DNA of 61,300 nucleotides, the filler included, from Hausera hauseri (taxonomy: Eukaryota): NCBI GenBank assembly GCA_046269625.1. It is 12 parts of 12 records of this genome, joined end to end, with 100 filler letters (N's around TTAATTAATTAA, not from the genome) between each part and the next. Parts side by side here need not be neighbours in the genome. Positions count along the whole stretch, not along the records: positions 1 to 4,698 come from JBJURY010470911.1; 11 more parts are not named here. The stretch is one strand, 5' to 3'. Position numbers and translations under genes: made by a program. The notes under the pieces were generated by a model. That model was not told where the DNA came from and made no database searches. It saw nothing but the letters and a program-made list of their open reading frames with translations. Below, one piece after another: positions 1,541 to 4,698 of this stretch (positions within the stretch are counted from its first letter, which is position 1; each line of letters starts with the position of its first letter).

Positions 1541-1895
1541 CTGGCCACAGACTAACCAAACTCCTCGCTGAAGTGGACAGGAAGAGTTACACACAATGAT
1601 TTAAAAAAAACGGCAATGGAGTTGGATTTGACGAACAAACTTTCTTTTAAAAAGTTTAGAATTGGGTGCGCAGGCCCGTCTTATATTCTGCCATGTCCTC
1701 AGGAAGGATATATAGGACATTACCAGGATAATGATGCACTGGATACTAAAGGGAAACACAAAAAGAGGAAGACTGAAGAATAACCTGGTGTAGAACAGTG
1801 AAAACATCAGTGAACAACATGCAACACAGCTGGGGCATTATACGGGGGCTGGCTGAAACTAGAGATAAGTCCAGAACTTTGTTGCTGCCTTGTGA
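1541..1895 (+). mobile_element. RTE-clade LINE 3' fragment
   Basis: Decayed KRQWSWI..DITRIMMHWILKGNTKRGRLK..WGIIRGLAETRDKSRTFVAAL, a typical RTE ORF C-terminus. Confidence 0.7.
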
Positions 1896-1904
1896 GATGC
1901 TACA

Positions 1905-2030
1905 GGGGCTGAGGTACTGTCTGGCGGCGACCCATAGCTGACACTGACGAACCATAGTCGGCCAAGATCTTCTGCCAGACGTCCCATCACTGTCCCAGCC
2001 AACAGTGGGGAAACCGGCTAACTGGTGGAG
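1905..2030 (+). ncRNA. HDV-like self-cleaving ribozyme (decayed copy)
   Basis: P2 tctgccag/ctggtgga; P3-L3 acg-tcccat-cac (decayed from acg-tccccgt-cgt); J4/2 ggctaa; J1/2 hairpin gctgacactg..agtcggc. Confidence 0.55.
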
Positions 2031-2238
2031 GCTCGAGATGGTCCCCGGTTGAGAGGTTGATCACTTTTAGGAGGCCAAGCATTGCACTAAAGCCTGGAGG
2101 ACCACGGTCCACCCTCCTAGACACCACCAGGACAGCAGGAAAGCTCAATGCTACAACATCATAGTCCTCCTTAGGACTACAGACTTTATGAGGGCTCATC
2201 CAGAAGAGCTAACGCTCGGTGATGTGGAGATCATCAAT
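1905..2238 (+). mobile_element. Ribozyme-headed SINE-like element, copy A (most complete)
   Basis: Aligns by eye with 38596-38764, 48033-48300, 57184-57388 and 60782-61057. No ORF; no tRNA A/B box seen. Confidence 0.85.
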
Positions 2239-2289
2239 TAATCAATAGCCCAGTGTACAAGCTATACTGAACAGACTGTGCAACCAGCA

Positions 2290-3156
2290 CAAGGTTGTTA
2301 TGGCAGTGGATTCCATCTCATTGTGGAGTATCGAGAAACCGAAGAGTTGAGCAGACTGGCAAAGGAAGGTGCTGCTGTTTAGTAAATGATGTCCATTTCA
2401 TGGCTAAAGGCGAGTGTATAGGGCGTTTGAGTCCACATTTTTCCTTGACATCGGCACATGATTAGATTATGTTGTCAGCATAACGCCAGCCCACCTTTAC
2501 TTTCCCAGAGCGTTTCTCCAGTACACATTTTTGTTGGGTGGACCCCTGGAAGTGTTTAGGTCGAACAAAAATCCAATGCCCACAGCTGGAATTGAATTCA
2601 TGACCATAAGATCGGCAGACGAACAAACTAAGCACTACAGCACCGCAGCTCAAGGTGAGCAAAATAAACCTGTGACATATCGCATAAGAAAAACAAATCC
2701 ATCAGAATGCTGACAACAAATCAAGCTGGTCACCACTTACTATGTGCATATGTGAACACTCACGTAAGGCTGGAGTAAATATACTGAAGAACTGCCCAGA
2801 CTAGATCCAAATGAGGCAAAAACACCAGCCCAGTGAAACACCACTGAAAAACTGACAGCAGATGTTGACTTCTTGAAGTGAACAACAGAAAAAGAATCAT
2901 GCATGATTCATATTTCTCATCAGCAGTACAGTATGTGAAGCATACCACCATCAATGTGACTGCAGCACTGACAAAAATGACAGCTGACCGCCTAAAGCAG
3001 GATTGCCCATTATATTAGGAACTGAGAAAGCTTCTGTGACCGCCCCCAGTGACCATCCAAGACAAGCTGTATGGAGGAGCTGATGACCTCGAGATGACAG
3101 CTGTTTTCTTTAAAAAAATTCAGGTTGACATTTGAAGGCGTACGAAGAAGATGAAG
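2290..3156 (+). mobile_element. RNase H-bearing LINE (I/Nimb/Ingi group) 3' fragment, interrupted by a tRNA SINE
   Basis: QWIPSHCGV..LAKEGA (RNase H) near 2300-2375; QCDC..TADRLKQDCPLY..KLYGGADDLEMTA near 2950-3100; gaagaagatgaag tail. Confidence 0.7.
2462..2651 (-). mobile_element. tRNA-derived SINE (family 1)
   Basis: Minus strand has A-box-like gctgtagtgcttag and B-box-like gaattcaattcc. Homologous to 3720-3910, 37438-37580 and 47662-47768. Confidence 0.75.
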
Positions 3157-3719: not shown

Positions 3720-3910
3720 GGGTTATGTTCTCAGCACAACACCTGGTCGCCTTTATTTTCTCAGAGAAATTCCCTGGTACTCATTGTCTGAGGCTGGGTG
3801 GACCCCTGGAGTCATTTTAGTAAATGAAATTTAACCCGCCACACTTAGGATTGAACCCATGACCATGCAATCAGCGAGCGGGTTTACTAACTGCTACTCT
3901 ATTGCAGTTC
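3720..3910 (-). mobile_element. tRNA-derived SINE (family 1)
   Basis: B box gggttcaatcc on minus strand; shares tttcYcagagaa..ctggtactcatt..gggtggacccctgga with the other copies. Confidence 0.75.
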
Positions 3911-4389: not shown

Positions 4390-4690
4390 CAAGCGCTCCG
4401 AGTAGTCCTCATAATTTCTGGACCCATCATCAATGAGAAAACCTTGGCGCAAGAATAATAAAAAATAACAATCGTTATAAATTACTCTCAATCATACCCG
4501 GACTGAGATGATTGGGACATACTAAAAAAACAGAGGACAATAGACAGACCAAACAAGTCTGTAAACAGAGAGAAATGGGTACAAGACCATGAGGACGAAG
4601 ATGGAGGAGAATGCTGATGAAGACCTTCACGAACTAAAGATCAAGAACTGGAAGAAAAGCCACCAAGTACAGAGATACATAAGAGACATT
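4390..4690 (+). mobile_element. RTE-type LINE 3' fragment, decayed
   Basis: ISGPIINE..LR(*/W)LGH..DEDLHELKIKNWK motifs with stops and frameshifts. Confidence 0.55.
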
Positions 4691-4698
4691 GTATATAC

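Follow-up and report, generated by a model that had tools for sequence, protein, structure and literature searches.

Introduction

Self-cleaving ribozymes that fold like that of hepatitis delta virus (HDV) are established at the 5′ ends of R2, R4, R6, SART, Baggins, RTE and L1Tc (PMC6765202, PMC3774820, PMC3185411). In those of retrotransposons, a first helix (P1) of 6–7 base pairs (bp), a variable P4 helix and a J1/2 region of 23 to more than 700 nucleotides (nt) are normal, and R4, Dong, baggins and L1Tc are known to be cleaved at their 5′ ends (PMC3774820). Large HDV-like ribozymes can moreover be activated by structured J1/2 domains (PMC4908430). Short elements of related build have also been described: in the R2 short internally deleted elements (SIDEs) and the R2/R1 hybrid SIDEs, a ribozyme is linked to a 3′ end that stems either from its own long interspersed nuclear element (LINE) or from another (PMC3414825), and the NARTc and SIDER elements of trypanosomatids are non-autonomous derivatives (PMC3383444, PMC4035085). 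Here we examined part of a 61,300-nt stretch of DNA, filler included, assembled from 12 records of the Hausera hauseri genome (GCA_046269625.1) and hereafter called the window, in which positions 1905–2246 (+) hold a decayed copy of a high-copy repeated element that we named family 1. This copy is a dead insertion, diverged by roughly 10–15%, of a non-autonomous retroposon without long terminal repeats (non-LTR); it is probably of the SIDE type and is not a short interspersed nuclear element (SINE) transcribed by RNA polymerase III (Pol III). On the strength of comparative sequence analysis we consider it probable that the master copies of the family were able to cleave themselves through an HDV-like head. 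A second family, family 2, carries a different head of the same kind on the same 3′ module.

The closest described systems are the R2 SIDEs and hybrids of Drosophila (Eickbush & Eickbush 2012, PMC3414825), which like the families found here are short and non-coding and combine a 5′ HDV-like ribozyme with a LINE-type 3′ end. Neither they nor our families are Pol III SINEs, and both would rely on co-transcription. Heads and tails are modular in both cases, with the R2 ribozyme preceding the R1 3′ end in the hybrid SIDEs and two heads using one 3′ module in our families, and the SIDE ribozymes are 25–40% diverged with the fold kept by compensatory changes (PMC3414825), as appears to be the case here. 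However, SIDEs occupy one site in the ribosomal DNA in tens of copies or fewer and have known partners, R2 and R1 (PMC3414825), whereas the present families are found genome-wide, with ordinary target duplications, in thousands to ~10⁴ copies.

The L1Tc/NARTc system (PMC3185411, PMC3383444, PMC4035085) likewise comprises dispersed non-autonomous elements (NARTc and the SIDERs) with an HDV-like ribozyme at the extreme 5′ end. There the ribozyme, Pr77, is common to the autonomous LINE and its non-autonomous partner and releases their RNA from longer transcripts. Pr77 is however a minimal ribozyme of 77 nt that doubles as a promoter, it belongs to protists that transcribe polycistronically, and its elements end in poly(A)-type tails; the heads described here measure 127–152 nt, have a long structured J1/2 and are followed by microsatellite-like tails, in a genome that, with its many RTE-type LINE relics and CpG decay, appears to be that of an animal. 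Ribozyme-terminated LINEs (Ruminski et al. 2011, as relayed in PMC6765202) and drz-agam-1 (RF01787) share both the fold and its 5′-terminal position with our families, but are autonomous and coding, whereas here it is short elements that bear the HDV-like type. [quoted passage not shown] Finally, according to the account in PMC6765202, Webb et al. (2009) described genomes with hundreds of intergenic HDV-like ribozymes in which the downstream sequence is conserved and the upstream sequence variable. Elements of this kind have been described before, as R2 SIDEs, NARTc and ribozyme-terminated LINEs, and the families described below, which are unusually abundant, would be SIDE-like in their working.

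A dispersed short retroposon in the H. hauseri genome

The initial annotation of the window had described a dispersed, non-coding, non-autonomous retroposon and had suggested a BLASTN search of the source assembly and the building of a consensus. When the assembly (868.6 Mb in 909,086 contigs) was searched with window positions 1880–2260, 7,551 first-look candidates were returned, and the 40 that were scored showed 80–86% identity; the head as query gave 4,523 first-look candidates. Alignments of 30 and then 57 copies (numbered L below) yielded a family majority with a body of 356 nt plus a tail. All of these alignments converged on a common 5′ end, GGGACGGAGGTGCTGTGT (GGGACGG...), with unrelated upstream flanks, and on a shared 3′ terminus, ...GGTGATGTGGAGATCATC (...GAGATCATC), after which comes a tail of short repeats.

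Two further samples were drawn: an unbiased sample of 35 copies, picked in contig order by a 15-mer of the 3′ module, which contained 21 family-1 heads, 12 family-2 heads and two truncated copies, and a sample of 29 copies selected by the 3′ end with a 76-nt query. The common 5′ end at the predicted first base, G1, was borne out, with 30 of 40 head matches beginning at query base 1–2 and 22 of the 33 head-bearing copies in the unbiased sample extending to within 5 nt of base 1. Target duplications of 11–14 bp flank four copies (L018, L019, L052 and L053) and end exactly before G1, while shuffled controls gave none; in a fifth copy (L025) a target duplication before G1 was seen by eye. The 5′ truncation reported earlier was also confirmed, the 3′-end-selected copies being cut at scattered positions (41, 73, 77, 119, 156, 163 and 298).

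The copies sampled had a median identity of 90% to the majority, with many of the differences falling at CpGs, and family 1 is accordingly old. The number of copies was estimated from exact, CpG-free 15-mers, the counts being scaled up for the fraction of sampled copies in which the motif persists. The P4 motif of family 1 occurred 1,662 times in the assembly (none in the reversed control) and the 3′-module 15-mer AAGCATTGCACTAAA 4,141 times (two in the reversed control), which as rough scaled estimates correspond to ~5,200 family-1 copies with a head and to the 3′ part being present ~12,000 times. Taken with the target duplications and the 5′ truncation, these data support in silico that the element would be, by its behaviour, a dispersed, non-coding, LINE-mobilised retroposon.

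The initial annotation had assigned CAA-type tails to the element. This holds for a minority of the sampled copies, which end in (CAA)n or (CAAGAA)n, but not for most, in which the tail is (AATC)n. Many copies with (CAA)n-type tails were found among the contigs of one public run, and these alternative tails may reflect subfamilies or mobilisation by several LINEs. The (CAA)n- or (CAAGAA)n-tailed copies include L012, L041, L057 and L071, and public-run contigs show loose ends at window positions 2232–2233. L071 had been considered as a divergent relative and was rejected, being just a more decayed copy of family 1.

No small-RNA head was detected, in agreement with the absence of tRNA promoter boxes noted earlier: ARAGORN found no tRNA, and Rfam searches with the window and 20 copies gave no tRNA, 5S or 7SL match. 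Since no head derived from any of these RNAs was found, the element does not fall under the definition of a Pol III SINE.

An HDV-like fold in the family-1 head

The first 152 nt of the family-1 majority contain the complete helix order of an HDV-like ribozyme, P1-(J1/2)-P2-P3-L3-P3′-P1′-P1.1-P4-J4/2-P2′. P1 is formed by positions 1–6 and 108–113 (GGGACG/CGTCCC) and is followed by a 78-nt J1/2 (positions 7–84). P2 pairs positions 85–94 with 143–152 (CCTCTGCCAG/CTGGCGGAGG) and P3 pairs 95–97 with 105–107 (ACG/CGT), enclosing the L3 loop TCCCCGT (98–104). Two C residues of L3 (99–100) would pair with the GG that follows P1′ (114–115) to give P1.1. A GCAA joiner (116–119) then leads to P4 (120–137, with pairs 120–126/131–137), of sequence CGGTAGG-GAAA-CCTGCCG with a GAAA loop, and P4 is connected to the 3′ strand of P2 by J4/2 (GCTAA, 138–142). 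The letters expected to be conserved in such a core, namely L3 UCCCCGU, the GG after P1′ and J4/2 GCUAA, are kept in the majority of copies.

The family majority can form each of the 28 pairs that make up the HDV-like double pseudoknot, P1 and P1.1 included, whose failure to form in the consensus the initial annotation had named as grounds for abandoning the ribozyme assignment. The core that it had pieced together from decayed copies in the window (P2, P3, L3, P1′, GG, GCAA, P4-GAAA, GCTAA and P2′, in HDV-like order) coincides with the family majority. Its J1/2 hairpin (gctgacactg/cagtgtcagc) does not; this came from decayed copies and is not part of the family sequence. A different helix of 10 bp can form in the family-1 J1/2 between positions 9–18 and 46–55, and is present in the minimum free energy (MFE) fold of a natural copy, L090:19–145(−), in which every helix of the ribozyme fold is intact, P1 included. 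The assembly contained no more than two copies that differ from the 68-nt majority core by one mismatch at most, and the changes in both keep the pairing. Across 50 family-1 copies, 89% of the pair cells hold a standard pair in register, against 24–53% when the partners are slid, though this control is weak because the structure was derived from the same sequences.

The 5′ end of the family provides an independent argument, P1 taking up the first six bases. Full-length copies have their 5′ end at the predicted cleavage site, which is also the edge of the target duplications. A 5′ end at the first base of P1 is the trace to be expected if the RNA was cut on the 5′ side of G1 and then reverse transcribed completely.

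A second head on the same 3′ module

Family 2 surfaced during the search for a partner LINE (copies L099:309–435, L104, L115 and L120–L131). Its last ~200 nt are common with family 1, starting at about family-1 position 159, and the sequence upstream is different. A search with family 2 gave 2,337 first-look candidates, and the 15-mer of its P4 was counted 1,265 times in the assembly (none in the control), from which ~2,400 copies were estimated by scaling. The head measures 127 nt and, in 15 copies, has a sharp 5′ end that is again GGGACG.

This head too can be drawn as an HDV-like ribozyme. P1 has 7 bp (GGGACGC/GCGTCCT) with a G1·U wobble, which is present in 11 of 14 copies, and J1/2 is 57 nt long with two hairpins. 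These are followed by P2 (CCTCTCAAC/GTTGGGAGG), P3 (ACT/AGT) with the L3 loop TCCTCGC, the GG directly after P1′, P4 (CAGAA-GAAA-TTCTG) and J4/2 (GCCAA). All 26 pairs form in the majority and also in two natural copies (L124 and L130), and pairing per helix in 15 copies ranged from 83 to 95%. Rfam model RF01787 (drz-agam-1) aligned in register to 7 of 12 family-2 copies, with 25–30 bits and E values of 0.002–0.05, and RF02682 gave 17.7 bits on one copy (L104).

In order to compare the two heads, we used R1, a covariance model built from family-1 cores only and covering P2, P3 and P4. R1 found 13 family-2 cores over the full model length, with E values of 4e-6 to 0.07 (in 23 kb). Between the two majorities, seven pairs are changed on both sides (P2, four; P3, one; P4, two), ten are identical and two P4 pairs are deleted on both strands. 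The only pair lost is the terminal one of P2, and one-sided changes disrupt none. The unpaired letters of the core are identical or nearly so in both families. This pattern of paired changes is as selection on an HDV-like fold would predict. The core sequence strings of the families gave no match in the literature searched.

Search for the partner LINE

Immediately upstream of the window copy, positions 1690–1904 (+) are the 3′ part of an RTE-like open reading frame (ORF) that has the same orientation as the element and is fused directly to G1. The junction at 1904/1905 is real, because a 320-nt contig of one public run spans window positions 1654–1973 without a difference. The fusion suggests either a jump between templates at the RNA's 5′ terminus, as in R2 (PMC3414825), or a later deletion. 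The RTE-like family to which this piece belongs extends ~60 nt beyond the equivalent of position 1904 to an end of its own with a (GATG/ATG)n tail. It was rejected as the partner, having a different 3′ end and tail and nothing in common with the element, and the mobilisation by an RTE proposed in the initial annotation consequently finds no backing in this neighbourhood.

The copies recovered with the 76-nt 3′-end query belonged to family 1 or family 2 or were truncated, and nothing else was seen among them. Copies whose sequence departs from the family downstream of the head were examined as candidates and also rejected, as they proved to be interrupted by other repeats. A genome-wide scan with RF01787 did reveal a LINE with an HDV-like ribozyme, on contig C497463 (L132:871–934; 47.2 bits, above the cut-off). 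An uninterrupted ORF of 941 codons lies ~195 nt downstream of the ribozyme (L132:1130 to L133:955) and contains endonuclease (Exo_endo_phos) and reverse transcriptase (RVT_1) domains; it is followed by a short 3′ untranslated region (UTR) and an A-rich/(TA)n tail. This LINE has no 3′ sequence in common with the element, and a tblastn search of the element with its ORF gave a best E value of 1.6, which is not significant, so that it was discarded as the partner. Ribozyme-headed LINEs are nevertheless present in this genome, which provides a precedent for an HDV-like head.

Proposed mechanism and alternative explanations

We propose that the element would be co-transcribed within a longer transcript of the host or of a neighbouring element. 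Within this transcript the ribozyme would fold through P1, P2, P3, L3, P1.1, P4 with its GAAA loop and J4/2 GCUAA, and would cut immediately 5′ of G1 to leave an RNA with a defined 5′ end. The ~200-nt 3′ module and the microsatellite-like tail would then be bound by the reverse transcriptase of some LINE, the module being presumably the part that is recognised, and target-primed reverse transcription into a new site would produce the 11–14 bp target duplications and the frequent 5′ truncation. The data show the family with its abundance, common ends and target duplications, the fold as read from sequence, and the preservation of that fold by compensatory changes in family 2; the catalytic step, co-transcription and the partner's identity and clade are what we infer.

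Several observations weigh against this explanation. Family 1 has G1-C as its first P1 pair in 34 of 50 copies, and just three of the 50 have G·U. In the HDV and CPEB3 ribozymes this pair is a G·U wobble that is important for catalysis. Family 1, with G1-C, may therefore cleave poorly or slowly. No Rfam HDV-family model matched family 1 (window, 20 copies and best natural copy), even at E ≤ 10, a failure that is probably due to sensitivity lost to the 78-nt J1/2 and the pseudoknot, and the RF01787 scores of family 2 stay under the gathering score of 37. Covariation within family 1 was nil, with 89.4% of pairs formed against 89.0% in shuffles; this is expected under neutral decay and lends the ribozyme no support. 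The differences between the families reflect few independent events, because the families are homologous and the alignment was fitted to the model. The MFE stability of natural copies is ordinary (z = −0.5 and −1.9), and nearly all copies are decayed, with two of family 1 and six of family 2 lying within one mismatch of their majority core. Lastly, LINE sequence was attached to the 3′ module in none of the 35 unbiased and none of the 29 3′-end-selected copies.

The G-C pair in place of G·U at the cleavage site and the lack of an Rfam match to family 1 would also be accounted for by a head that is structured and non-catalytic, such as an internal RNA polymerase II (Pol II) promoter or a protein-binding element, with initiation at base 1 and the likeness to HDV ribozymes an inherited relic. 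The 77 nt of L1Tc/NARTc, which act as promoter and ribozyme (PMC3383444; cf. Pr77), set a precedent for the promoter function and to that extent count against our reading. On the other hand, the compensatory changes between the families are located in P2, P3 and P4, the letters of L3, P1.1 and J4/2 are kept in both, and P1 is built from the very first bases in both. These three features together are the signature of selection on a ribozyme fold and not on a promoter alone, and we judge a non-catalytic head to be unlikely. Still more improbable, in our assessment, is that the whole HDV-like assignment is a chance pattern in a GC-rich repeat. The unremarkable thermodynamic z-scores would allow for this, as would the fact that the structure was first derived from sequences later used to examine it; chance would however have to explain the match of a curated model, RF01787, to 7 of 12 family-2 copies in the right register, the cross-detection of family 2 by R1, seven double-sided changes with no one-sided break, and the coincidence of the 5′ end with the start of P1 in two families, and we give it hardly any credence.

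A further possibility concerns the origin of the copies, which might be recurrent internal-deletion or 3′-UTR fragments of a full-length LINE that bears both the ribozyme and the module. R2 SIDEs originated in this way (PMC3414825), and LINEs with HDV-like 5′ ribozymes do occur in this genome. Yet the junction between head and module is identical in every sampled copy, LINE sequence is absent from both samples as given above, and the ORF of the ribozyme-headed LINE finds the element no better than at E 1.6. A single origin followed by amplification fits these data better, and recurrent fragmentation appears very unlikely. We thus retain the self-cleaving head as the probable explanation.

A broader proposal, which we put forward tentatively and with less than even confidence, is that the two families form an undescribed superfamily of short elements of ~10⁴ copies, with interchangeable HDV-like heads on one LINE-recognition tail. 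If so, amplification to SINE scale would have been reached in an animal genome by a third route, in addition to Pol III and hammerhead heads. Ruminski is said to have found that in some organisms HDV-like ribozymes go with long elements and hammerheads with short ones; under the superfamily proposal the HDV-like type would not be confined to long elements. If the heads cleave, a promoterless short retroposon would have reached SINE-like numbers by a ribozyme and a borrowed 3′ end alone, and thousands of dated insertions would be available as a natural experiment. The two heads, one of 127 nt with G·U and the other of 152 nt with G-C and a longer J1/2, could be compared for catalysis. Since Rfam HDV-family models miss family 1 entirely, the annotation of other genomes probably also leaves elements of this sort under ‘unknown repeat’.

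Anatomy of the window copy

The whole decayed copy occupies window positions 1905–2246 (+; 342 nt), as delimited by BLAST and by MAFFT alignment with 30–57 genomic copies. The extent given previously, 1905–2238, was right as to the start, while 2238 falls inside the tail. Aligned with the family majority, the copy shows 84% identity and 25 gapped columns; it retains 18 of the 28 family pairs and is itself an inactive relic, in keeping with the decay recognised at the outset. The only ORF within it encodes 70 aa on the minus strand, which upholds its earlier description as non-coding.

The relic of the ribozyme head, equivalent to family positions 1–152, covers 1905–2031 (+), with deletions of ~25 nt in J1/2, of a single nucleotide in L3 and of 4 nt in the 3′ strand of P4. 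It starts at the predicted cleavage-site G1 (position 1905), the first base of the element, at which full-length copies begin and which target duplications abut elsewhere. The 5′ strand of P1 (1905–1910) reads GGGGCT here and GGGACG in the family, and is followed by what is left of the J1/2 insert (1911–1968). The ribozyme core (1969–2031) was matched by R1, built from 39 other copies, over the full model length with 48.2 bits (E = 4e-10). Within this core, all on the plus strand, we located P2 (1969–1978), P3 (1979–1981), L3 (1982–1987), P3′ (1988–1990), P1′ (1991–1996), the P1.1 partner (1997–1998; AG here, GG in the family), P4 with its GAAA loop (2003–2015), J4/2 GGCTAA (2016–2021), with the putative catalytic C at 2018, and P2′ (2022–2031). 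The remainder consists of the hairpin-rich 3′ module common to both families (2032–2235, +), the same ~200 nt that stand behind the family-2 head, and a tail, AATTAATCAAT (2236–2246, +), which by comparison with the tails of other copies is a decayed (AATC)n repeat.

Other features of the window

Further retroelement remnants were observed in the vicinity. Positions 1233–1548 (−) carry what remains of the C-terminal region of a LINE reverse transcriptase, oriented against the RTE piece at 1690–1904, and Pfam DUF6451 matches 1233–1385 (E = 5e-17). Downstream of the element, the translation of 2295–2390 (+) resembles, by eye only, a retroelement RNase H C-terminal motif (...IPSHCGV..N...V.....KEG...). 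Two related relics at ~2400–2650 (−) and ~3720–3900 (−) are apparently a tRNA-derived SINE with a conserved central domain, although ARAGORN found no tRNA in the window; the same repeat also interrupts several copies of the element, for example L046 and L141. At 4560–4698 (+) a frame that stops at the end of the piece was seen by eye to resemble a LINE ORF C-terminal motif (...RGRP..RW..). Finally, positions 1037–1079 and 1164–1206 form a 43-nt inverted repeat, 91% complementary, with 84 nt between the arms and an adjoining C-run, which may be a small foldback element or one resembling a miniature inverted-repeat transposable element (MITE).
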